Source: Histomonas meleagridis 2922-C6/04-290x
Taxonomy: Eukaryota; Protista; Parabasalia
Length of the DNA stretch: 64,000 nt
Direction: 5' to 3'
Assembly: GCA_020184695.1 (NCBI GenBank)
Contig: JAANOX010000278.1
Location: 124,001-188,000 of the forward strand
In this document: piece after piece, positions 19,131 through 60,099 of the stretch
Layout: the number at the start of each line of letters is the position of its first letter
Position numbering within the stretch: the stretch's first letter is position 1
Position numbers and translations under genes: made by a program
Notes under the pieces: model-generated
The model's database searches: none
Seen by the model: only the letters and a program-made list of their open reading frames with translations
Told to the model about the DNA's origin: nothing

Positions 19131-19546
<416 letters not shown>

Positions 19547-20571
19547 TTATTTTATTTAATTTTTTTTATAGTCTAATGCATACAATAGTTCATCATTCAC
19601 ATTGTTATTTTCAAAAATATTCATTAACAAATGATATCATTTATTTATGTGTTCATACGCAATGTGTGATATATTGATCAAACTCGAAATTAAATAAATA
19701 GCATCAAAATATTGTAATAAATATTTAGAATAAAGTAATAGAGGGATATTGTAGAAATTTTGAAAAACGATTCAATTGCAAATTGCAAGATAACTTCATA
19801 ATATTATCATGCTATTTTTTAGATTTATAATATATATACTAACGTTATTTATTTAATGCATCAAATAATTAAATTATATTTAAATTTGTAAACGAATTTT
19901 TCATGTTCCAACTTTTTAATTTTTTTCTATGGTTTTTGAACGTATTTTTTTATTATAAACATTTTTATTTCCAAATCAAATAATAATTTATCAAAATAAT
20001 ATTGTAGCATCAATTGAAATTATTATGTTATTTATTATATTTCAGAATCAATTTTCATTATTTTTTGGTTTTTAAAATGAATTATTCTGATAACTAAATA
20101 TTAAGTGAATATAAATCGACATTAATAAAAATACAAATATCGAATCGAATACTAAAAAATGTAATAAAGAGATTTCAAACCTCCTAATCTAAAGTGAATT
20201 GATTATCAATCATAAAAAAATCAAAATCAAAATAATTAAGTATTTAACAAAGAGCATTAATAATATCAAATATTTTTTGAGTTCACAAATTAAAATTATG
20301 AATATGTATTGATTTATTAACAAAAGAATATTTATCGGTGGTGACCGTTTGGAGTACGATTTTAATTCAGAATATTTTTGAGTGGGGCAACGGTTTTTTA
20401 TCAAAAATGTTTTGTTCGGACTTTATTCCAAATTAATTGATAAGTCAAAGTGTTTAAAAGAATCATTTAATTTAAGAAAAGAAAAATCATAATCAAGAAA
20501 TTGATATTTGAAAATAATCTCTGATCGAAATACAATTTTGATTATGTTGAAAATCAAGAAAAAAAAATGTA

Positions 20572-41712: not shown

Positions 41713-43260
41713 TTATATCTGACTGACAAATTTTTCTTCTTTTAAATCGTCTGCAAATGGATCTTCTTCAATATTTGAATTATTAATCCCAAATGAAAAT
41801 GTATTATCTATTTCATTAATTTTATTATTATTTTCATCTGAAATATTCATTTCTTCTTCATTTTGTTTCCGCTTCTTATTTTGATATTTAATCATAAATA
41901 TTATGATTATCATTATAAATACAATAATTATTACAATTACAATAACAATTATAATGATAATTAATGTATTATTATCATTAGTGTTTATTATTACATCTTC
42001 GATATAAGAAATATAAAAGAAATTCGAATAATAAGTAAAATATTCCGGAAAATATATAATTGTATAATTGTAATATATGAAATCGACATAAATATATTTA
42101 GTTTCAGATTCAATGAAAGTAACTGAATAAGATTTTAAGAACGTATAATAATAAATTGATAAAGTTTTTATTAACGATAAAGAATAAGTTAAAGTATAAG
42201 TGTTAACGAAAGTAAAATTCATCGAAAATGTATTGACATAAGTGTTTGAATCAAAATTACTTTTTGATTTCGTAAATGTATTTAATTTCGTAAATGTATT
42301 TGAGTTAGTGAATGTGCGTGTTGGCTGGAGACATTCGTCAAGTGTTGCTCCCTTAGTAATTTCCATATTTCCAAATGTTTCATTTTGATATGTTTCTATT
42401 GTCATAACTCTTGTCGCATTGATATTAACAAATGCATCATTTTGTATTTCTGGTGAAATTTCTCCATTAAAATGAATACATTGAAGTGATGTACAATTAG
42501 TAAATGCACATGAATTAATATAATGAACATTTTCATCAATAAAAATTCTTTCTAAATTATTACAATAAGCAAATGTATAATTCATAATAGAAATGACTGA
42601 TTTAGGAATTGTAAATGTTTTACTTTTCATATTCGGATAACTAATAATTTGTGTAATTACTTTATTATATAAAACGCCATCGTTTTCATAATTCGAATAT
42701 TTGAAATTTTTTTCTGAAACATTAATAAATTGAAGTTTCGTACATTCTAAAAATGGATTCCCAATTGAAGTAACTGCACTTGGTATATAAATATTCACAA
42801 GGTTTGTACATCCTCTGAATGCATCTGAGCCAATACTTCGGACGCCTTCATATAATGTTATCGTTTCAAGTCCTATACATTTGTAAAATGCATTATCACT
42901 AATGCTATTACAACGGATTGTAATGTTATTTAATGAAATACATTCTGCAAATGCACCACCTCCAATTCCACTCATTAATTTATCTGGAAATTGGACATGT
43001 TCTAATTTTGGACATGATGCAAATGCTCTACTATTTATATTTCCAACTGTTTCTCCAATTATTACTGTTGTTAATAAAGGCCATTCTCTGAATATATAAC
43101 TTTCAATCACGCCAACATTAATAATTATAATACGCTCTGTTACATTCATATAATATTTTTAATAATCAATGAAGTCAGATATTGTGAGATTTTTTGTCTC
43201 TTCGTCATATGATTGCTTTGTATTAACAAAAAATATAAGCAATAAAATCAGAATAACTTC
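41713..43260 (-). CDS. BspA-like (TpLRR/LRR_5) type I surface protein
   Basis: Repeats such as IGSDAFRGCTNLVNIYIPSAVTSIG, a T/S-rich stalk, a TM helix and the acidic tail EEDPFADDL. A signal-like segment lies in frame upstream of a TAA at 43159-43161, so the 5' end is broken or mis-sequenced. Confidence 0.85.
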
Positions 43261-44889: not shown

Positions 44890-45210
44890 AATCCTTTTAA
44901 TAAAAAATAAATTATTTCAAATGTAATATAAAAGAATACTCAACGATCATTTTAATAAGCCATTACATGATATGACAAATGTAAAATTTTATTACTTCTC
45001 ATCGATCAGTTGAATATATTTGAGGAGAGTTCCGCAAACTCCAAATCGTGAAATATTTTCTCAGGAATAATTTTATATACAGTTTGGCGATTATGAAAAA
45101 CATTTTAATCTTTCATTACATTAAAAGTCATTAATTAAAAAAAATAAATTATAAAATAATATGAAATTTTATTTCAAACTCAAAAATATATAAAATATTT
45201 TCATTTAAAA

Positions 45211-46757
45211 TTAATATTTCATACCAAGTGCGATACCATAACCAACTGAACTAATAATTAATACTGCGATAATCATTGTTACCCAACCAATTTTGAAATA
45301 TTCTGGACCTTCTAAAAATGTTTCTTGTGTTAATTGATCTGGATAACCATAAACATGTTTACAAACACCACTAACTAATGCGTTAGGGAATGATGAAATA
45401 TGAAATAGTTGTGCGCCACTAATCATAATTGCACTTAAACAAACAAATAAACTAACATGACCTGTATGTCTTCCTAAGATTGCGATAACTGGATAAAGGA
45501 TTGAAGCAGCTGATGTAGAATTAATTAATGAACCAAGAATACCTTCGATAAGTAAAAAGATAGTTAAAAGTGGCCACATTGGAATAGATTCTAATGCACC
45601 TGATACTGATGAAAGTAAATCAAGAAGTCCGCTTAATTTCATAGCTTCACCAAGTGCAAGTCCTCCACCCATTAATGAAAGTGTTGACCAACGAATACTA
45701 TGAAAATCTTCAGTATTTAACATACCTGATCCAAAAAATGAGATAACTGGGATTAATGCTGTAATACCTACATTACCAAGAACACTTGGAAATGTTTCTT
45801 CAAGTGTCCATAAAACTATAGTTAATATAGTAATAATACATGCATATGTATGTTTAATTGACCATGGATCATATTTTTCATTAGAATTTAATGTAATATT
45901 AATATGATCTGTTAATGGTTTAAAACGTAATATTAAATATAACCATTCTGCTACACAAATTAAGATTGATAATGGAAATCCAAAAACACATCCAATCTGT
46001 AAATGAAATCTTAATCTTTTCTGATGTTTGCATATATTGTAATGCTAATACATTTTGTGGTGATGCTATAGTTGTAGGCATTCCTGCACGATTGCCTCTC
46101 CATGCAATACCAAATAAAAATGCTTTAATAAATGGATCATTAGGATCTAATGAACGAATAATTGGCATCGTTAATGATAATACTAATGTCGTCGATGCTA
46201 CATTAGATAAAAATGCTGCTATAAATAAATTAATTAACATTATCGTTAATAAAATCCACTTAGGATTTTTAGATAAACGTTTAAAAAACGAACCCTAAAA
46301 TACGATCTGTAATACGTAATTTAGATAAACATGCACTCATGGTCATAGATCCTAAAAATACAAAAATAATTGGATCCATAAACTTCCAAGCAAATGTAGA
46401 TGCTAATGTAGATGCACTAATACGAAGACGTGTTTCTGAATCAATACCAACTCCAAACCAAACACATATAATAGGGATTAAATAAGCTGAAGCATATGCT
46501 GGAAGTCCTTCTGTTGACCATAAAAATGCAACAGTAATTAATAATGCAAGACATGTATGTTCTGTTGGATATGATTTTAATATTGGGATAATATAAACAA
46601 CTCCAAAGATTAATCCTGCTATAAGTGGAAGAAATGATACTTTTTGTTTTGGTGGAGTATCAACTGTTAAGTTCTCAGTAGTAAACGCTGATAATTCGTT
46701 GTCACTCTGGAAGATTAATGGTGACGGATCAGTTTGAAGAACAGCTGTGTTGCTCAT
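45211..46757 (-). CDS. SLC13/PHO87-type anion (phosphate/carboxylate) transporter, copy A, frameshifted
   Basis: WSTEGLP, FLGSMTMSACLSK, FLSNVAST, GMPTTIASPQN, MGGGLALGEAM and SSFPNA. Frameshifts at ~46290 and ~45970. No SPX domain. Confidence 0.85.
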
Positions 46758-47407
46758 CTTGAACGGTAGCACTTTTCCATATCGTTTTCATATCGTTTTA
46801 TTATGGTCAAAATTGAATGTGCTTTATCGTTTTAATTCAATAAAAGTGACAAAATATGCCACATGCTTCTTTACAACACATGATATGCCAAATTCTTAAT
46901 TGCAGATAAAGAGAAACTTACGTTTGGACTGTAGCCTATTTTTTCCTCATGGACTAATAAGAAATATCTGGGAAATGTATTAATTTGAATCATGTTTCTG
47001 ATCAAATCGAAGAAACTCTTCGCTGAGGCTTTAGGAATTTTTGGAAACAATCGTTTCCAAAAAATAATACTTCATGTTGGTTGTTGGAAAAAATCATTTT
47101 AATGTTTCAAAATCTTCCCTATGTTCCTTTCTAGGTGATTTTTATTGTTTCGGAGCATGAAACATATCTTGGTTTTAGTTTTTTTGATGGAAGATAGGTT
47201 TTGGATGATCTCTTTTAAAATTTATTGTCAAACGCCACGTCGATCAAATTCAATTTAAATACAAGTGGGATGATTGGAATTGAATGGGATTTTGTGAGGA
47301 GTTAAAATGATTTTTTCGTGTTTGAATTACACCCCATTCATTTTTTCAATTGCGATTGAAAAACTTATTTAATTTTGAGGTTACAGCGATTCAAAAAGTG
47401 AAAAGTG

Positions 47408-48946
47408 ATGGAAGACTCCACTCTCCAGGCCCCTCTCCTTTTACAAAGCGATTCGGAATTATCAGCGTTTACTACTGAGAACTTAACAGTTGATACTCCA
47501 CCAAAACAAAAAGTATCATTTCTTCCACTTATAGCAGGATTAATCTTTGGAGTTGTTTATATTATCCCAATATTAAAATCATATCCAACAGAACATACAT
47601 GTCTTGCATTATTAATTACTGTTGCATTTTTATGGTCAACAGAAGGACTTCCAGCATATGCTTCAGCTTATTTAATCCCTATTATATGTGTTTGGTTTGG
47701 AGTTGGTATTGATTCAGAAACACGTCTTCGTATTAGTGCATCTACATTAGCATCTACATTTGCTTGGAAGTTTATGGATCCAATTATTTTTGTATTTTTA
47801 GGATCTATGACCATGAGTGCATGTTTATCTAAATTACGTATTACAGATCGTATTTCAGGGTTTGTTTTTAAACGTTTATCTAAAAATCCTAAGTGGATTT
47901 TATTAACGATAATGTTAATTAATTTATTTATAGCAGCATTTTTATCTAATGTAGCATCGACGACATTAGTATTATCATTAACGATGCCAATTATTCGTTC
48001 ATTAGATCCTAATGATCCATTTATTAAAGCATTTTTATTTGGTATTGCATGGAGTGGTAATTGTGGAGGAATGCCTACAACTATAGCATCACCACAAAAT
48101 GTATTAGCATTACAATATATGCAAACATCAGAAAAGATTAATATTTCATTTACAGATTGGATGTGTTTTGGATTTCCATTATCAATCTTAATTTGTGTAG
48201 CAGAATGGTTATATTTAATATTACGTTTTAAACCATTAACAGATCATATTAATATTACATTAAATTCTAATGAAAAATATGATCCATGGTCAATTAAACA
48301 TACATATGCATGTATTATTACTATATTAACTATAGTTTTATGGACACTTGAAGAAACATTTCCAAGTGTTCTTGGTAATGTAGGTATTACAGCATTAATC
48401 CCAGTTATCTCATTTTTTGGATCAGGTATGTTAAATACTGAAGATTTTTCATAGTATTCGTTGGTCAACACTTTCATTAATGGGTGGAGGACTTGCACTT
48501 GGTGAAGCTATGAAATTAAGCGGACTTCTTGATTTACTTTCATCAGTATCAGGTGCATTAGAATCTATTCCAATGTGGCCACTTTTTAACTATCTTTTTT
48601 TACTTATCGAAGGTATTCTTGGTTCATTAATTAATTCTACATCAGCTGCTTCAATCACTTTTATCCAGTTATCGCAATCTTAGGAAGACATACAGGTCAT
48701 GTTAGTTTATTTGTTTGTTTAAGTGCAATTATGATTAGTGGCGCACAACTATTTCATATTTCATCATTCCCTAACGCATTAGTTAGTGGTGTTTGTAAAC
48801 ATGTTTATGGTTATCCAGATCAATTAACACAAGAAACATTTTTAGAAGGTCCAGAATATTTCAAAATTGGTTGGGTAACAATGATTATCGCAGTATTAAT
48901 TATTAGTTCAGTTGGTTATGGTATCGCACTTGGTATGAAATATTAA
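47408..48946 (+). CDS. SLC13/PHO87-type anion transporter, copy B, frameshifted
   Basis: Same motifs; intact to 48450, then homopolymer frameshifts between ~48450 and ~48670. Confidence 0.85.
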
Positions 48947-49483
48947 TTTTAAATGAAAATATTTTATATATTTTTGAGTTTGAAATAAAATTTCATATTA
49001 TTTTATAATTTATTTTTTTAAGATGTTCCCATAAGATATTAATGAAATAACTTGAGAAGTAACAAAATTTTTGGTTATGTGAATCTTTAAAAAACTATCG
49101 AATAAGGAATTATCTTTTGAAAAAATGATTATAAATTATTTGGCAAAATGTGTTCCTCGTTAAATAAATTCAACAAGACATCAAAATGAAAATATGAACA
49201 TATAAGTTGGATGATTTATTTTAAATGATTGCAAACAAGAAGTTGAATATAATGAAAGATTATTAAATTATTTTCCTGATTAACCAAAGGTTAATCTTTT
49301 ACTTTATCATTTGGAATCACTTCAAAAATATGGATTTAATTTTAAAGAACTTAATCAACTTATTCATCGCTTTTAATTCATTACCGGGACAAATTTTGAA
49401 ACATTCAATTTTTCTAATCGATTCAGATCAAAATTGAGATTGATTAACGGTGAATCGGTGAAAATTTCTATACGAAACAAAGA

Positions 49484-49930
49484 TTGGAGAATTACTTCAT
49501 TTTTATTTTGATGTCAATGGAAGAACCACTTCTTGCAAATGCTGAAATTGATGTTACAACAGATAATGTAACAGAAATACCTTCACAAGAAAAAATAGAA
49601 ACACAACAAGAAGAAATAAATCTCATTTCATTTGATGAAAATGATGAACAACAAGAACAAAAAGAGAATCAAAAAGAAGAAGAAAAAATAAACATCAATA
49701 ATAAAGACGAAACATCTTCATGTCAAATAATCAAGAATGGATTTATAAGAGCTATTGAATTTGCAGATAGTGTTACATGTCAATGTGTTGATAAAGTAAA
49801 ACAATTACATGTCACGCAAGTCCTTTCTAATGTATTTGGGAAGATGTGTCATGCAGTTGATAATTCCACGATTACAATTTTTCATTTATTCCAAAGTAAA
49901 AGTAAAAAGAATCATTTAAAAACAGAATAA
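49484..49930 (+). CDS. Hypothetical acidic protein, left copy
   Basis: 148 aa ORF, probably starting at MSMEEP; mirrored at 59503-59850. Confidence 0.6.
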   Translation: MENYFIFILMSMEEPLLANAEIDVTTDNVTEIPSQEKIETQQEEINLISFDENDEQQEQKENQKEEEKININNKDETSSCQIIKNGFIRAIEFADSVTCQCVDKVKQLHVTQVLSNVFGKMCHAVDNSTITIFHLFQSKSKKNHLKTE

Positions 49931-50018
49931 ATAATATTTAATAATAATTTTATTTTTAAATTTATGTTTTATGACGACCGTTTACTAAGGATAAACGTTC
50001 TATTAATAAAAGAAAAAA

Positions 50019-51447
50019 ATGAGGAGCAAACCAGTTCTTATTGAAGAAAAGAAAAATTCGAAAGAGAAAGAGAAAGAAAATAATCCTCCTCAAGGAATTA
50101 AAAAAGAAGTTATTTCAAGTATTTCAAACCCACTTTTAACTCCTTTTCATTGGAATGGTTATGATGTATTTTTAATTATGATTCTTGTTATATTAGGTAC
50201 ATTTAGTCGATTTTGGATTATTCAATATCCACGACATCTAGTTTCATTTGAAAGTAACCAAATTCATGTTCTTAATTCGTTTCTTAATGGATCTTTATAT
50301 GTTGATAAACAACCACCATTTGGAAGTTATATTTTATCACAGTTAGCGAAATTTTCGAGTATGATCTTTCATTTGAAATTCTACGAACAGAATATAATTA
50401 TACATATCATAATATGAAATATGTTTCACTTCGTTCTATTCCTGCATTTTTTTCAACATTAACGATTCCAATTTCATATTTTATAGTTCGAAGTTTTGGG
50501 GGTAATCGTTTTACATCATTTTCGACAGGACTTTTTGTAATGTTTGATTTCTTATTGATTTCGCTTGGCCGACATTGTTTTACAGATGGACTTTTTACAA
50601 TTTTTTATTTCAGTTTCAGTACTTTTTTCATCACTTTCTACACATTTTAAAGTTTGAAGTATTTATCACAGTATATTATATTTAATTTCAGTTATTTTTC
50701 AGGATTTTTCATTGTCAACAGAATCTGAATGCTTTTGGAGTTTGCATCTTTTCATTATTATTTAGTCAATTTCGTCTTCGACTTCTTTTAACAGGAATTA
50801 TTATTCCAATTTTTATCTTTTTTATCTCATTTTCTATTCAAGTTATATCAGAGCCATATAAATCAGAGCATTCTTGGTCATTACCACAAGAATATCAAGA
50901 CACATTACTTTCACCAGGACAAATTTATAATATTCAACATAAATTAATTCTTCGACACAGCATTGAACTTATTAGAAATGTTTCGATTACGTCAATTAAC
51001 ATTTGTTGATAAATATGAATGGTATTTATGGAAAATTATGGGATGTAAATGGAATATTTTATGGACACAAATGAATCGATTTGTTTCATCATTTGGTAAT
51101 TTTATTGTTTGGGGCATAATAGTTCTTATTGTAATTTATTTGATTCTTAAAATGCTCATTTCGCCATCGAATTGAAAGACCGCTTGATAAACTTTGTGTT
51201 GGTTATGTTATTTGTTTAATTTATTATATTCAAGGGTTAAATGAACGTGCAATTTGCGATTATGAAATATCAGATCTTTTTGGTCTTTGGCTTTTAGCGC
51301 TTTTTATTGAAACAGAATTTAATGAAAGTGTTTATGGATTTGTTCTTCCATTGTTAAATATTATTACAGTTGTCATTTTTATGGAGTCCATTAGTTTATG
51401 GATATGAACATTTTGATCAACGCTTTCTTCCATATTTTGCAAAATAA
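50019..51447 (+). pseudogene. PMT-like glycosyltransferase, left copy with many frameshifts
   Basis: Fragments 50019-50417, 50414-50650 and 50963-51175 match the intact copy at 57881-59317. Confidence 0.8.
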
Positions 51448-51563
51448 ATTTTAACTTTTATAAATATATTTTTTTTTTTTTCATTTTTTCATTTTTTGTG
51501 ACCAAATAATGATTCAATAATGAAAAGTGACGAAAAATTAATAATTTTTTTCTTCTTTATTTA

Positions 51564-52216
51564 ATGGATTCACAATCATTAGGGATATGTATTTCTATTA
51601 CGAATGAATTTATGTCACGTCCATTAAATGCATAAATCCAGTTAGTAACGACGAGTTAGCCCGGATCTTCTGAGTTAATTCAAACCCTATGGATTTTTCA
51701 CTGATTGAAAGTAAATTAAGCCAACATTTATATCGAAATACATCAGAATGGTATAAAGATGTTTGTTTGATTTATGAGAACGCAGTTCAATATCATACAG
51801 AAACTAGTATTTGGGGTATTATAGCCACACAATTATTACATGATTTTGAAAAGATGGCCAAAGGATTAAATTTTCAAAGTCGTGAAGAATATTTCGAAAG
51901 TCTTTCTAAAGACACGATTAAATATGGGAAGCTTATTTCATCATCACCACATAAAACTGAGAATGATTCATTTCGTCAAGGCTGTATCAAACGCTCAGAA
52001 GGTGTTACTCGTTTTCCACAAGAAAGGTTGGTTATTCTTGATAAACTAACAGAGCATTCAGACGAAGAAATTGTTCGAATTTCTATTCTTTATATTATTA
52101 AAAGCATGCACAAAGATCCACCTTTAACATATGAAGACGACACAGTTACCATTGATTTTGATAAATTGAAAGATCAAACATTAAATGCGTTATATTTATA
52201 TTTTCAAAGTCTCTAA
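51564..52216 (+). pseudogene. Bromodomain plus ET-like protein, left copy with 5' frameshifts
   Basis: Mirrors 57102-57764; indels near 51630-51680. Confidence 0.8.
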
Positions 52217-52354
52217 TAATTTATACATGAATGAATAAATGAATAAATAAATAAATATAATAATAATAATAAAAATATTTTTCTGTTGACAAAAATCAAT
52301 CAAATCAATAAACGTACACCGAGCAATAATTGAATTGGTCAATCAAAAGAAAAG

Positions 52355-53553
52355 ATGGAAACAGTTACATGGGAAATATTAATAAGTTCAGAACCTCGTT
52401 TACTGAGTGCAGCCAAGAAATTATGGCCATCACCAACAAAAATTCAACAAAAAGTTATCCCTTTAGCATTAGAAGGTAAAGATATTTTAGCACGAGCACA
52501 AACGGGTAGTGGTAAAACAGCGTCTTATATTATACCTATTTTAATTGGAATTTTACGTTCACCACTTCCATGGAGTTATAAAGCTTTAATTTTAGTTCCT
52601 ACACGAGAATTATGTAAACAAGTTAAGATGCAATTTGAAGAATTATCACGTTATTGTCATATTTCTATAACACATTTAGGTGATGATGTTTCACTTGCGT
52701 CACAACGAGTTGCTTTAACAGCAAATCCACCCTGCATGTATTATTAGTACACCTGCGTATGTACATTATTATCACTTAATATTTATAAGAATATTTCATT
52801 TTTAGTTATAGACGAGTCAGATCAACAGTTGTTTTAAATTCACAATTACCAGTAGCATCACGTATTCATATTTTACAAGAATTTAATCGTGGTGGTATTG
52901 ATGTATTAGTTGCTATTGATGAAGATAATGAAATTTTTAGTCATGAATTTAGTGCATCACGAGGTATTGATTTTCAAAACATTGATTGTGTTATTAATTT
53001 TGAAGTTCCTAAAACTATTGAACAATATATTCATCGTGTTGGTCGTACAGCACGAGGTATGAAAGAAGGTATTGCTATTACATTTATTAATAATGAGAAA
53101 GATATTGAATTTATAACAGAATATCTTCGAACACAAGAAAACAATGAAATTCGACGATTTGATTTTAATGTTACTGATGCGGAAATCTTTCGATATCGAG
53201 TTAGTTCAGTCTTAGAAAGTATTACGAAGACACAAATTAAATCATCTAAACGCATTGATATTAAACGTGAATTATTAAATAGTGAACGCTTGAAGAGTCA
53301 TTTTGAAGAAAAATCCAGCCGATTTGCAAATGCTTAAACACGATTCGTCACTTCTTCCATCTCGTGTTGACAAGAATCTTCGAGTTTTACCCGATTATTT
53401 AGGTAACCAAATTCGACGGCAGCAAATCCACTCACACAGAGAAGGCGCGCGAAGCGAGTAATTCCACGCACACACGTAATCAATTGCGAAACTGACGGTA
53501 TCAACGCCGCGATTAAGAAACATAAACATAAGAACAAAAATCGACGTCATTAA
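52355..53553 (+). pseudogene. DBP9/DDX56-like helicase, left copy with a 334-bp internal deletion
   Basis: Junction GATCAACAGTT|GTTTTAAATTC at ~52830 removes the SAT motif region; further indels follow. Confidence 0.85.
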
Positions 53554-53779
53554 CATATAAATAGATAAATACATACACAAATATAATGTTATGAAGAATG
53601 ATAAATAATAAATTTAATAAATAATTATTATATAGAAATAATTTGTATTTTATTTTTATTTTTTAATAATTTGATGAAATGTAATATAAAATGTTATACA
53701 TCGATATCAAAAAATATTAAATATTTGGACCTGAATCATCAACTTCAGTCACTGCTCAAAAAACATGAAACTGTTGAAC

Positions 53780-54490
53780 GTAACTCTATATGAAAATGGT
53801 TTTTATTAGAGAAAATGTATATGCAATTGAGAATAATGCATTTTGTTCGTGTAAAAATCATATATTCATTAATGTTACAAATGAAAATTTATATTTTTCT
53901 AATTAAAAACTATGGAATTTTATATGGAAAACACATCAAGATGGTAATGATTAACCTTATGAATACTATCACAAAAAAAGAATACATTTACTAAATCATC
54001 TGATTCCATTTGTTATTTCAAATTTATTTACTTTTTTTTATTCAAATGGTATAAAATTGACTAATACAATAACATTAACACAAACATTCTCTGTTACACA
54101 AATAATTAATTATAATTTGACGTACGATTTCATTTTCTGTTTCTATTTACATTTTTTGTTGAATTATGTTTGGAAATAAATTTTTTCTGAATATATTATT
54201 GTTGTATATTTAATATTTTATATTATGGCAATTTTTTTACAATTATATATATATCAAAGTGAAAAAAACGATAATAAAAACACAATAATAATTATAAGTG
54301 TTTGTGTTGCTGTTGTTGTAATTATAATAATTGCAATACTTGTCATCATTTGTATTCGAATTCATAACAAAAAACAATTAAGTAATGAACTAGAAGTAAA
54401 AAGTTTCCGAGATAATCAATGAATAATATTAATGAAGGCCCATTTGCAGATGATTTTATAGAAGATAAATTTATTTATCATATTTATTGT
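53780..54490 (+). pseudogene. BspA-like surface protein remnant in the palindrome 2 spacer
   Basis: VYAIENNAFCSC..FINVTNEN, TFTKSS, the TM IIIISVCVAVVVIIIIAILVIICIRI (ORF 54225-54422) and the tail EGPFADDFIEDKF; many stops. Confidence 0.75.
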
Positions 54491-55424
54491 ATAAACGCAG
54501 GATGAGCAATTAAGAAAAATTAACAATAATTTCTTTTGATATAAAAAAAAATATATGTTTTACCTTTAAAATCTGTATTGATTAGCCTGTTGTCATGTTT
54601 TCAATACTTCTCAAGCAATATTATAATGTTTGTCTTTTCAAGGGATTTTTTATGTAACTACATAATATCGGTGATTTGAATTAAAATATATTAATAATAA
54701 TTGATGATAGTTGCGATTATTTTATATGTGCATTTATGACATTTCTAATACCAAAAGAAAATCATTAGTTTGAACCGAAATAATAATTAATGATATTGTA
54801 TGTGTTTCGATATACTGTATTTAAAAAATAATCGTGTTGATTTATTTAGGAAAATAATCTTATAAAATTTCCCAACTTGCAAATGTTATTTGTGAAGATG
54901 ATATATAATCCAATTATAAGAACAAATGTATATTATCAAATAATTTTAACTCATTTTAATGGAGTGAAAGTAGGTAATAGTATATTGAGGGTAAATACAT
55001 CAAAATATAAAAATTACATTTAAAGTAACAAGTTATTTTATATCATTATAAGGCTATCAAGCATAAGTTTATAAAATTTACAAGGGAGAAAATGCAATAA
55101 CGAAAGAAAACGCATTCTTGTATATTAAATATTATGAATTAAACTTGGGATGATAAATGATTGATAGAATTTGATTAATGGTCCCAATTTTTTATAGTAT
55201 CCATATTTTTTTGAAGCTATCAATAACGCACATTGAGTTCCTTAACTTGTTTCAATATAAAATTATTTAAAAATATAACATTTTATATTACATTTCATCA
55301 AATTATTAAAAAATAAAAATAAAAATAAAATACAAATTATTTCTATATAATAATTATTTATTAAATTTATTATTTATCATTCTTCATAACATTATATTTG
55401 TGTATGTATTTATCTATTTATATG

Positions 55425-56963
55425 TTAATGACGTCGATTTTTGTTCTTATGTTTATGTTTCTTAATCGCGGCGTTGATACTGTCAAGTTTCGCTAATTGA
55501 TTACGTGTGTGCGTGGAATTCATTTTCGCTTCGCGCGCCTTTTGTGTGAGTGGATTTTGTTGCCGTCGAATTTGGTTACCTAAATAATCGGGTAAAACTC
55601 GAAGATTCTTGTCAACACGAGATGGAAGAAGTGACGAATCGTGTTTAAGCATTTGCAAATCGGCTGGATTTTCTTCAAAATGACTCTTCAAGCGTTCACT
55701 ATTTAATAATTCACGTTTAATATCAATGCGTTTAGATGATTTAATTTGTGTCTTCGTAATACTTTCTAAGACTGAACTAACTCGATATCGAAAGATTTCC
55801 GCATCAGTAACATTAAAATCAAATCGTCGAATTTCATTGTTTTTCTTGTGTTCGAAGATATTCTGTTATAAATTCAATATCTTTTCTCATTATTAATAAA
55901 TGTAATAGCAATACCTTCTTTCATACCCTCGTGCTGTACGACCAACACGATGAATATATTGTTCAATAGTTTTAGGAACTTCAAAATTAATAACACAATC
56001 AATGTTTTGAAAATCAATACCTCGTGATGCACTAAATTCATGACTAAAAATTTCATTATCTTCATCAATAGCAACTAATACATCAATACCACCACGATTA
56101 AATTCTTGTAAAATATGAATACGTGATGCTACTGGTAATTGTGAATTTAAAACTGATGATTTAATACTAAATCGTTCTAAAAATAATCGAACTCGATATC
56201 CATTATTACTATTATTAACAAATAAAAGAATTCGTCGTCCAATACTTCTGTTTTGAAGTAAAGCATAAAATACTTCATATTTACGTTGTTCTTCAACTTT
56301 AATATAATAATGCATTAAATGATTACTACGACTTTCTTCTTGAATATCAATACGAACTGGACAATTTAAAACTAACGTTTGAAGTCGTTCAATTTCATCG
56401 CCTAATGTAGCTGACATTAAAAATGATTGTCGTGTAGATGGAAGTTTGCTAATAATTTGTTCAATGTCTGGGCCATGATCTAATCCTAACTGTTGATCTG
56501 ACTCGTCTATAACTAAAAATGAAATATTCTTATAAATATTAAGTGATAATAATGTAATACGTGCAGGTGTACTAATAATAATTGCGGGTGGATTGGCTGT
56601 TAAAGCAACTCGTTGTGACGCAAGTGAAACATCATCACCTAAATGTGTTATAGAAATATGACAATAACGTGATAATTCTTCAAATTGCATCTTAACTTGT
56701 TTACATAATTCTCGTGTAGGAACTAAAATTAAAGCTTTATAACTCCATGGAAGTGGTGAACGTAAAATTCCAATTAAAATAGGTATAATATAAGACGCTG
56801 TTTTACCACTACCCGTTTGTGCTCGTGCTAAAATATCTTTACCTTCTAATGCTAAAGGGATAACTTTTTGTTGAATTAATGTTGGTGATGGCCATAATTT
56901 CTTGGCTGCATCAAGTAAACGAGGTTCTGAACTTAATAATGTTTCCCATGTAACTGTTTCCAT
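55425..56963 (-). CDS. DBP9: DEAD-box RNA helicase DBP9/DDX56-like, frameshifted near 55880-55930
   Basis: ARAQTGSGKT, PTREL, DESD (DEAD variant), [18 protein letters not shown] and C-terminal [17 protein letters not shown]. Confidence 0.82.
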
Positions 56964-57101
56964 CTTTTCTTTTGAATGACCAAATCAATTATTACACGGT
57001 GGACGTTTATTGATTTGACTGATTTTTGTCAACAAAAAAATATTTTTATTATTATTATTATATTTATTTATTTATTCATTTATTCATTCATGTATAAATT
57101 A

Positions 57102-57764
57102 TTAGAGACTTTGAAAATATAAATATAACGCATTTAATGTTTGATCTTTCAATTTATCAAAATCAATGGTAACTGTGTCGTCTTCATATGTTAAAGGTGG
57201 ATCTTTGTGCATGCTTTTAATAATATAAAGAATAGAAATTCGAACAATTTCTTCGTCTGAATGCTCTGTTAGTTTATCAAGAATGTAACCAACCTTTTCT
57301 TGTGGAAAACGAGTAACACTTTCTGAACGTTTGATACATCCTTGAAGAAATGAATCATTCTCATATTTATGTGGTGATGATGAAATAAGTTTCCCAAATT
57401 TAATCGTTTCTTTAGAAAGACTTTCAAAATATTCTTCACGACTTTGAAAATTTAATCCTTTGGCCATCTTTTCAAAATCATGTAATAATTGTGTGGCTAT
57501 AATACCCCAAATACTAGTTTCTGTATGATATTGAACTGCGTTCTCATAAATCAAACAAACATCTTTATACCATTCTGATGTATTTCGATATAAATGTTGG
57601 CTTAATTTACTTTCAATCTGTGAAAAATCCATAGGGTTTGAAATAACTTCAGAATATCCGGGTAACTCGTCGTTACTAACTGGATTTAAAAAAAATGCAT
57701 TTAATGGACGTGACATAAATTCATTCGTAATAGAAATACATATCCCTAATGATTGTGAATCCAT
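57102..57764 (-). CDS. Small bromodomain plus ET-like domain protein
   Basis: FLNPV..LPGYSEVISNPMDFSQIESKL..LIYENAVQYH and C-terminal TIDFDKLKDQTLNALYLYF. Confidence 0.85.
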   Translation of the reverse strand: MDSQSLGICISITNEFMSRPLNAFFLNPVSNDELPGYSEVISNPMDFSQIESKLSQHLYRNTSEWYKDVCLIYENAVQYHTETSIWGIIATQLLHDFEKMAKGLNFQSREEYFESLSKETIKFGKLISSSPHKYENDSFLQGCIKRSESVTRFPQEKVGYILDKLTEHSDEEIVRISILYIIKSMHKDPPLTYEDDTVTIDFDKLKDQTLNALYLYFQSL

Positions 57765-57880
57765 TAAATAAAGAAGAAAAAAATTATTAATTTTTCGTCA
57801 CTTTTCATTATTGAATCATTATTTGGTCACAAAAAATGAAAAAATGAAAAAAAAAAAAATATATTTATAAAAGTTAAAAT

Positions 57881-59317
57881 TTATTTTGCAAAATATGGAA
57901 GAAAGCGTTGATCAAAATGTTCATATCCATAAACTAATGGACTCCATAAATAAAAAATGACAACTGTAATAATATTTAACAATGGAAGAACAAATCCATA
58001 AACACTTTCATTAAATTCTGTTTCAATAAAAAGCGCTAAAAGCCAAAGACCAAAAAGATCTGATATTTCATAATCGCAAATTGCACGTTCATTTAACCCT
58101 TGAATATAATAAATTAAACAAATAACATAACCAACACAAAGTTTATCAAGCGGTCTTTCAATTCGATGGCGAATGAGCATTTTAAGAATCAAATAAATTA
58201 CAATAAGAAATATTATCCCCCAAACAATAAAATTACCAAATGATGAAACAAATCGATTCATTTGTGTCCATAAAATATTCCATTTACATCCCATAATTGG
58301 CCATAAATACCATTCAGATTTATCAACAAATGTTAATTGACGTAATCGAAACATTTCTTTAATAAGTTCAATGCTGTGTCGAAGAATTAATTTATGTTGA
58401 ATATTATAAATTTGTCCTGGTGAAAGTAATGTGTCTTGATATTCTTGTGGTAATGACCAAGAATGCTCTGATTTATATGGCTCTGATATAACTTGAATAG
58501 AAAATGAGATAAAAAAGATAAAAATTGGAATAATAATTCCTGTTAAAAGAAGTCGAAGACGAAATTGACTAAATAATAATGAAAAGATGCAAACTCCAAA
58601 AGCATTCAGATTCGTTGACAATGAAAATCCTGAAAAAATAACTGAAATTAAATATAATATACTGTGATAAATACTTCCAACTTTAAAATGTGTAGAAAGT
58701 GATGAAAAAAGTACTGAAACTGAAATAAAAAATTGTAAAAGTCCATCTGTAAAACAATGTCGGCCAAGCGAAATCAATAAGAAATCAAACATTACAAAAA
58801 GTCCTGTCGAAAATGATGTAAAACGATTACCCCCAAAACTTCGAACTATAAAATATGAAATTGGAATCGTTAATGTTGAAAAAAATGCAGGAATAGAACG
58901 AAGTGAAACATATTTCATATTATGATATGTATAATTATATTCTGTTCGTGGCATTTCATACGAAAGATCATACTCCGAAAATTTCGCTAACTGTGATAAA
59001 ATATAACTTCCAAATGGTGGTTGTTTATCAACATATAAAGATCCATTAAGAAACGAATTAAGAACATGAATTTGGTTACTTTCAAATGAAACTAGATGTC
59101 GTGGATATTGAATAATCCAAAATCGACTAAATGTACCTAATATAACAAGAATCATAATTAAAAATACATCATAACCATTCCAATGAAAAGGAGTTAAAAG
59201 TGGGTTTGAAATACTTGAAATAACTTCTTTTTTAATTCCTTGAGGAGGATTATTTTCTTTCTCTTTCTCTTTCGAATTTTTCTTTTCTTCAATAAGAACT
59301 GGTTTTTTGCTCCTCAT
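57881..59317 (-). CDS. Protein O-mannosyltransferase-like (PMT/GT39) membrane protein without MIR domains
   Basis: RFWIIQYPRHLV..DKQPPFG, SEWYLWPIM, SFGNFIVWG and C-terminal FYLWSPLVYG. Confidence 0.78.
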   Translation of the reverse strand: MRSKKPVLIEEKKNSKEKEKENNPPQGIKKEVISSISNPLLTPFHWNGYDVFLIMILVILGTFSRFWIIQYPRHLVSFESNQIHVLNSFLNGSLYVDKQPPFGSYILSQLAKFSEYDLSYEMPRTEYNYTYHNMKYVSLRSIPAFFSTLTIPISYFIVRSFGGNRFTSFSTGLFVMFDFLLISLGRHCFTDGLLQFFISVSVLFSSLSTHFKVGSIYHSILYLISVIFSGFSLSTNLNAFGVCIFSLLFSQFRLRLLLTGIIIPIFIFFISFSIQVISEPYKSEHSWSLPQEYQDTLLSPGQIYNIQHKLILRHSIELIKEMFRLRQLTFVDKSEWYLWPIMGCKWNILWTQMNRFVSSFGNFIVWGIIFLIVIYLILKMLIRHRIERPLDKLCVGYVICLIYYIQGLNERAICDYEISDLFGLWLLALFIETEFNESVYGFVLPLLNIITVVIFYLWSPLVYGYEHFDQRFLPYFAK

Positions 59318-59502
59318 TTTTCTTTTATTAATAGAACGTTTATCCTTAGTAAACGGTCGTCATAAACATAAATTTAAAAATAAAATTATTATTAAATATT
59401 ATTTATTCTGTTTTTAAATGATTCTTTTTACTTTTACTTTGGAATAAATGAAAAATTGTAATCGTGGAATTATCAACTGCATGACACATCTTCCCAAATA
59501 CA

Positions 59503-59850
59503 TTAGAAAGGACTTGCGTGACATGTAATTGTTTTTCTTTTATCAACACATTGACATGTAACACTATCTGCAAATTCAATAGCTCTTATAAATCCATTCT
59601 TGATTATTTGACATGAAGATGTTTCGTCTTTATTATTGATGTTTATTTTTTCTTCTTCTTTTTGATTCTCTTTTTGTTCTTGTTGTTCATCATTTTCATC
59701 AAATGAAATGAGATTTATTTCTTCTTGTTGTGTTTCTATTTTTTCTTGTGAAGGTATTTCTGTTACATTATCTGTTGTAACATCAATTTCAGCATTTGCA
59801 AGAAGTGGTTCTTCCATTGACATCAAAATAAAAATGAAGTAATTCTCCAA
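59503..59850 (-). CDS. Hypothetical acidic protein, right copy (frameshift near 59530)
   Basis: Mirror of 49484-49930; its coding sequence would extend to ~59405 without the frameshift. Confidence 0.55.
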   Translation of the reverse strand: MENYFIFILMSMEEPLLANAEIDVTTDNVTEIPSQEKIETQQEEINLISFDENDEQQEQKENQKEEEKININNKDETSSCQIIKNGFIRAIEFADSVTCQCVDKRKTITCHASPF

Positions 59851-60099
59851 TCTTTGTTTCGTATAGAAATTTTCACCGATTCACCGTTAATCAATCTCAA
59901 TTTTGATCTGAATCGATTAGAAAAATTGAATGTTTCAAAATTTGTCCCGGTAATGAATTAAAAGCGATGAATAAGTTGATTAAGTTCTTTAAAATTAAAC
60001 ATAAATAAAAAGCAAATTCTTAAAGGTTGTGAAAAGAATTTTTTGTCAGTCACATAATTAAATATTTTTAGTTAATTTACATATTTTTTATTAAATTTT

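Follow-up and report, generated by a model that had tools for sequence, protein, structure and literature searches.

Two head-to-head transporter genes of the poultry parasite Histomonas meleagridis form a small palindrome with near-identical arms and diverged 5' ends, which, with a probability that we put at about three in four, reflects an old inverted gene pair that was recently homogenised by arm-to-arm (intrachromosomal) gene conversion. The locus lies in an assembly of an attenuated strain of this organism, within C278:124001-188000, a stretch of 64,000 nucleotides (nt) that was analysed as a whole and is referred to below as the window. A first-pass annotation of the window had described a palindrome with near-identical arms and diverged 5' ends, and this observation is confirmed.

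Self-comparison of the window by blastn reveals the inverted repeat where it had been placed, with arms that are 98.98% identical over 1566 alignment columns around a spacer of 758 base pairs (bp), from which each gene reads outward. At the inner boundary, identity is perfect from the GAA (Glu) codon of the ELSAF motif, i.e. codon 17 of the right gene and codon 21 of the left gene, and at the outer boundary it stops 73 nt beyond the TAA stop codon, in good agreement with the earlier description of identity from this Glu to ~75 bp past the stop. Outside the arms, the left and right flanks are unique and unrelated to each other. Genome-wide (43 Mb), the arm is present in two copies only, the spacer and both 5' ends occur once, and the next paralogs to the arm reach at most 74% DNA identity. 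The components of the palindrome are as follows.

45138-46697, minus strand: left arm, 1560 nt; left gene body from the ELSAF Glu codon through the stop, with 73 nt of 3' flank
45211-46757, minus strand: left transporter gene, starting MSNTAVLQTDPSPLIFQSDN; its pieces match Pfam CitMHS
46698-46757, minus strand: left-specific 5' coding segment, 20 codons; family-typical N-terminus
46758-47407, no strand: spacer centre, non-coding, with both divergent upstream (promoter) regions and no open reading frame of note
47408-47455, plus strand: right-specific 5' coding segment, 16 codons; homologous to the left N-terminus but diverged, with a deletion of 3-4 residues
47408-48946, plus strand: right transporter gene, starting MEDSTLQAPLLLQSDS; 348 codons open as assembled, then broken
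47456-49019, plus strand: right arm, 1564 nt; matches the reverse complement of the left arm

The genes are predicted to encode anion transporters of the Pho90 type (CitMHS/DASS) that lack an SPX domain, with phosphate or another anion as the putative substrate. Pieces of the genes match Pfam PF03600 CitMHS (1.6e-21) and PF00939 Na_sulph_symp (1.7e-13), and the closest full-length homologue, P0001 (513 residues, 84-90% identical, from a metagenome), aligns over its residues 38-508 to the membrane domain of yeast Pho90 (8r33; E=1.5e-53), with weaker matches to VcINDY (4f35) and SLC13. No SPX regulatory domain was found in the Pfam search, and the proteins, of ~510 residues, begin ~35 residues before the first membrane helix. 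The homologues, which carry database names such as 'phosphate transporter' and 'sodium:sulfate symporter', all come from parabasalids or from metagenomic contigs; elsewhere in the genome are seven further family members with open frames, four of them close paralogs (~52% protein identity) and three more distant. Four paralogous proteins translated from the assembly match H. meleagridis proteins at NCBI with 100% identity. The two bodies of the palindrome are ~100% identical to each other, versus 85-90% to their nearest relatives, P0001 and P0099. The latter two, on metagenomic contigs of 2.5-2.8 kb, are 93% identical to one another without gaps, and may belong to two strains or, in a sister organism, to a pair that was not homogenised.

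Homology and divergence of the gene starts

The evidence that carries the case for gene conversion lies just inside the spacer. Over 15 aligned codons of the unique segments DNA identity is 49%, and all seven identical residues (7/7) are encoded by different codons; the codons that the first-pass annotation had quoted, TTC CAG AGT GAC AAC GAA in one gene and TTA CAA AGC GAT TCG GAA in the other, are present in the sequence, as are the two different N-termini that it had read. Its further claim that each gene has its own upstream region is borne out by a comparison of the 333 nt preceding each ATG, which gives a local score of 13 versus a null of 11.6 +/- 1.5 (p=0.22), and no similarity is detectable between the two halves of the spacer centre.

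The two N-terminal peptides are nonetheless similar as proteins. Compared directly, without arm residues, they give a BLOSUM62 global score of 28, versus 5.2 +/- 5.3 for shuffles (p=7.5e-4); among the 1051 Met-started six-frame peptides of the window, the best scores 20, and none reaches 28. Alignment with 13 homologues reveals a family-wide N-terminal motif, M..L...D..PL[VI]F..D.E[IL]S.FT. The left N-terminus is nearly the same as those of P0001 and P0099, and the right N-terminus retains the family pattern L.. PL[LV][FL] ..D.E, in frame and with its ATG at a family-typical distance. On a family N-terminal profile (a hidden Markov model built without H. meleagridis sequences), the left peptide scores 24.4 bits and the right peptide 5.6 bits, a value reached by 0.19% of the stop-free six-frame 16-mers of the window and by none of the 1051 Met-started ones.

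Because there is protein homology with saturated codons, a single-copy spacer and paralogs with unrelated N-termini, the two gene starts appear to be old homologues, for neither of which could any other sequence of the genome have been the donor; a search for a third donor of either 5' end found none. The switch from saturated divergence to ~1.56 kb of identity falls within one codon, in sequence that is still homologous, and at its far end the identity gives way to unrelated 3' flanks, a pattern that is classically the mark of paralogs having recombined non-reciprocally. The interpretation that had been proposed for the palindrome, i.e. an old inverted pair homogenised by conversion, is thus supported, with N-termini that are homologous yet differ at all synonymous positions, and with no third donor.

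Recent partial inverted duplication would account for the structure without an old paralog. Codon 21 to 73 nt past the stop would have been copied, by fold-back or template switch, in inverted orientation ~0.76 kb upstream of the original, and fused by chance, in frame, to a pre-existing short open reading frame. Incomplete duplication likewise gives an identical coding region with unrelated flanks, a caution that has been raised for paralogs in Caenorhabditis elegans (PMC3966223), and it fits both with the MEDSTL-type N-terminus of the right gene, which was found in no organism other than H. meleagridis, and with the 5.6 bits of that N-terminus on the family profile, equalled by 3.8% of shuffles of the right peptide (p=0.038). 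It predicts, however, unrelated sequence past the boundary, whereas the right N-terminus, in the 15 residues that precede the boundary, resembles its left counterpart at a level that no Met-started peptide of the window matches, and keeps the family pattern, the frame and the position of the ATG. With the requirement for an open frame added, the joint chance of such a fusion is well below 1e-3, and partial duplication is therefore distinctly unlikely. The earlier argument that a recent duplication would not be expected to give two old starts agrees with the presence of homologous N-termini written in different codons.

With respect to how the palindrome may have evolved, the mechanism, direction and timing of recombination are what we infer. 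A paralogous pair would have stood head-to-head for long enough that the promoters became unalignable and the first 16-20 codons saturated at synonymous sites. Non-reciprocal recombination, in one recent event or several, would then have overwritten ~1.56 kb of one gene with the sequence of the other, over a tract that starts at codon 17/21 and extends 73 nt beyond the stop, most likely through repair of a break in one arm with the other arm as template. The genes would thereby have come to share their protein body and 3' end while keeping separate promoters and N-termini. A single recent event and ongoing homogenisation are not distinguishable here; that crossover between the arms might invert the spacer, as has been suggested, is a reasonable conjecture.

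Arm differences, assembly quality and the virulent strain

The arms had been described as almost identical, which holds with respect to their overall identity, but that description hid seven indel events and seven substitutions (14 differences in all), which leave both genes frameshifted as assembled. The left gene lies in three frames owing to an extra T at 46288 (T6 versus T5) and another at 45986 (T5 versus T4), and the right gene in three open reading frames owing to frameshifts at 48445 (an extra T, T5 versus T4) and 48657-48659 (+A/+T); these frameshifts, two in each copy, had been missed in the first-pass annotation. The right gene has further T-run expansions at 48587 and 48596 (net +3). 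The seven substitutions of the left gene are at 46297, 46290, 46097-46086 (four) and 46010, and five of them alter family-conserved residues (S to L, S to R, C to R, G to A and N to K). Of the seven indel events all but one expand a T-run, the ratio of indels to substitutions is 1:1, and at every difference the opposite arm holds the in-frame, family-consensus state.

The assembly was built from Oxford Nanopore Technologies (ONT) reads with Flye --meta and polished in three racon rounds with Illumina reads mapped by default minimap2; a base accuracy of 99.79% was reported, and among 21,822 raw indel differences between the assemblies of the attenuated strain and a virulent strain, which are clonal descendants, 2 were confirmed by Illumina data, neither of them in the gene studied here (PMC8529796). 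The virulent strain was sequenced and assembled separately, and is compared here through its gene models alone, three of which are consecutive and fall in the same clusters as the open reading frames of this locus.

KAH0801057: 318 residues, C-terminal two-thirds of the transporter
KAH0801058: 141 residues, MEDSTL-type N-terminus
KAH0801059: 140 residues, second C-terminal part, overlapping KAH0801057

Because the C-terminal parts in KAH0801057 and KAH0801059 overlap, the virulent assembly also contains two transporter copies. Both read WPLLTIFLLIEG and SAASILYPVIA, and one reads WSGNCGG, KINISF, an in-frame CFGFPLS and EDFHSIRW. Wherever the virulent models cover the defects of the attenuated arms they are without them, at least four of the differences being absent; their own breaks are at two different T-runs, which follow PIIFVF and QETF.

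Since the indels lie largely in T-runs, the virulent models lack the arm differences wherever they cover them, just two indels between the strains were validated and the other family members are open, we take nanopore consensus errors that escaped correction to be the most likely source of the arm differences, every frameshift included. The true genes are probably intact, and the true arms essentially identical. Such errors would survive polishing because short reads are not uniquely placeable in near-identical repeats, and tend to be drawn to the copy that already has the right sequence at the position concerned. A uniformly sloppy assembly was considered as the cause of the frameshifts and rejected: open frames are found in the seven other members of the family and in 17 of 19 PMT-family matches, and errors are concentrated in near-identical repeats.

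The palindrome itself could in principle be a product of assembly, i.e. of a chimeric or fold-back nanopore read, of a template switch at paralog homology, or of polishing that homogenised diverged paralogs. The use of ONT/Flye --meta with short reads mapped at default settings, the evident errors in the arms and the presence, only 316 bp away, of a second palindrome with many arm differences are all compatible with such an origin. Against it, the locus is interior to a contig of 519,561 bp with unique, mutually unrelated flanks, the spacer is unique and has two different, biologically sensible gene starts, reads of >4 kb would span the whole structure, and the independent library and assembly of the virulent strain again yield two copies. 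Polishing, moreover, maps reads to the best-matching copy and cannot erase a divergence of several percent. The hallmarks of a fold-back (a perfect hairpin that lacks a biologically distinct centre, usually located at a contig end and not reproduced in independent data) were not found at the locus, and we consider an assembly artefact very unlikely, consistent with the earlier dismissal of a simple fold-back.

Genuine frameshifts would make pseudogenes of both copies. Conversion would then also be real, having homogenised two decaying copies shortly before or during their decay. The at least two frameshifts per copy as assembled, and the five replacements at conserved residues in the left copy, are what decay would produce, and in the neighbouring palindrome the genes of one arm are broken, with a deletion of 334 bp among the defects that base-calling does not easily explain. 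The 1:1 ratio of indels to substitutions and the predominance of T-run expansions speak against decay, as do the retention of the family-consensus state by one arm at every difference and the virulent models, in which the defects are absent and the breaks lie at other T-runs despite the strains being clonal with 2 validated indels. That the genes are decaying in this way is, in our assessment, unlikely.

Several points, in addition to the MEDSTL-type N-terminus and the profile score of its shuffles already described, weigh against an old pair homogenised by conversion, or against the intactness of its genes. The homology of the 5' ends is judged from only 15-16 residues. P0001 and P0099 both carry the left-type N-terminus, and three distant relatives (56-63% identity), found on long contigs in a metagenome scan, are each single copy within +/-10 kb, although the latter say nothing on the age of the pair. 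A search of the virulent-strain annotation for a left-type N-terminus yielded only P0101, a fragment of the MEDSTL type; confirmation of the left-type start is thus limited to the attenuated assembly and, by similarity, to the relatives. Rapid divergence of one 5' end, in place of an old pair, is conceivable. The cluster of four substitutions within 12 nt of the left arm (46086-46097) is not typical of homopolymer error; searched as a possible donated tract, it matches no paralog.

The public annotation presents the two transporter genes in three fragments per strain, of 348, 158 and 153 residues in the attenuated strain and of 318, 141 and 140 residues in the virulent strain. Since the breaks fall at different T-runs in the two strains, our results suggest that unpolished nanopore errors in duplicated regions pose as truncated genes. 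The six fragments named 'sodium:sulfate symporter' would accordingly be corrected to two full-length genes broken by nanopore homopolymer errors, and this point on annotation and assembly quality is the most useful by-product of the analysis. Because ~20% of the H. meleagridis genome is reported to be duplicated, the same error probably affects many other duplicated genes, and could pass for pseudogenisation or for differences between virulent and attenuated strains.

Composition and neighbouring features

The G+C content at third codon positions (GC3) is 0.11-0.13 in the arms, versus 9/20 (0.45) in the left and 9/16 (0.56) in the right N-terminal codons that would have escaped conversion; these samples are small (n=20 and n=16), and elsewhere in the window one gene attains a GC3 of 0.55 over its first 20 codons. 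With GC3 values of 0.09-0.17, the genes of the two palindromes rank among the lowest in the window, whose mean is 0.23; a few other genes fall in this range too. GC-biased gene conversion was looked for and is not seen, the arm GC3 being low and within the range of other genes in the AT-rich part of the window. The GC3 step at the inner boundary runs in the direction opposite to GC-biased conversion, with the small samples noted.

To the left of the transporter palindrome are an FHA-domain gene and a gene for a BspA-type leucine-rich-repeat surface protein (41713-43149, minus strand; LRR_5, 2.7e-36) with a C-terminal membrane anchor. The latter gene has a very AT-rich, low-complexity tail, and is typical of trichomonad surface families. 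A tandem array detected in the window self-comparison at 19134-19569 (period ~51 nt, 95-96% identity) has one unit with weak similarity (70%) to 41799-41993, in the tail of the BspA-type gene. To the right of the transporter palindrome another duplicated block starts, which is the second palindrome.

49335-53698, plus strand: left arm of the second palindrome, beginning 316 bp right of the first
53699-55273: spacer of the second palindrome
55274-59999, minus strand: right arm of the second palindrome
57881-59317: PMT gene, open in the right arm
57102-57764: bromodomain/BET gene, open in the right arm
55893-56963: DEAD-box helicase gene, open in the right arm

The arms of this second palindrome, of ~4.4 kb, are ~97.5% identical, are separated by 22 indel events and a gap of 334 bp (left arm, at 52830), and are present in just two copies in the genome. 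Only the right arm has its PMT, bromodomain/BET and DEAD-box helicase genes open, those of the left being fragmented; the arm differences may reflect real decay and/or assembly error.

A more far-reaching proposal is that the transporter pair is a long-lived device, in which repeated conversion keeps one body under two promoters and N-terminal tails while occasional crossovers flip the 758-bp spacer. We regard this extension as unlikely. Were it true, the two starts would imply different regulation or targeting, the low GC3 of the arms (0.11-0.13 versus 0.45-0.56) would point to an AT-biased, recombination-associated mutation process, opposite to that of mammalian palindromes, and the neighbouring second palindrome would mark a general feature of Histomonas genome dynamics.

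Comparison with known systems

The transporter pair is a small, clear case of inverted paralogs in concerted evolution, and comes from the parabasalids, for which recombination biology is poorly known and no sexual cycle has been described. Its biological weight is modest: the kind of event is well known, and the palindrome, although real, is ordinary. The interest that the first-pass annotation attached to it was overrated, since the conversion signature is a classic one, known from the hsp16 modules and col-12/col-13 of C. elegans and from Y-chromosome palindromes.

In C. elegans, adjacent inverted or tandem paralogs, including the hsp16 modules and col-12/col-13, are in concerted evolution by interlocus gene conversion, and the hsp16 modules form an inverted repeat with a unique spacer of 416 bp (PMC3966223). 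The Histomonas pair resembles these in having neighbouring paralogs with identical or near-identical bodies and fully diverged flanks, in its arms of 1-2 kb and sub-kb spacer, and in that conversion is deduced from a sharp boundary of identity. It differs in that the boundary lies inside the coding region, such that the two proteins keep different N-termini, and in being a pair from a parabasalid protist, read in one genome. To our knowledge, no sexual cycle is known in the parabasalid Histomonas.

The human Y palindromes P1-P8 and the X palindromes are, according to two reports, kept by arm-to-arm gene conversion, and rare crossovers invert their spacers, which is the basis for the idea of spacer flipping (PMC3723533, PMC8981503). 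They share with the Histomonas pair inverted, near-identical arms (>99% in the sex chromosomes) around a unique spacer, but their arms measure 9 kb-1.45 Mb and hold whole genes, whereas those in Histomonas measure 1.56 kb and hold one partial gene. Conversion in the sex chromosomes is reported to be GC-biased, and was demonstrated with population and phylogenetic data; in Histomonas the arms are GC3-poor relative to the 5' codons of the same genes outside the putative tract, and conversion is deduced from one genome.

A direct parabasalid precedent comes from the transmembrane cyclase paralogs of Trichomonas vaginalis, for which gene conversion or crossover has been reported (PMC2914791). Unlike the head-to-head, two-copy Histomonas palindrome, these cyclases are dispersed and constitute a large family with many pseudogenes. 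With respect to the encoded protein, the Histomonas product is like yeast Pho90 (8r33) over the membrane domain, and unlike it in lacking SPX.

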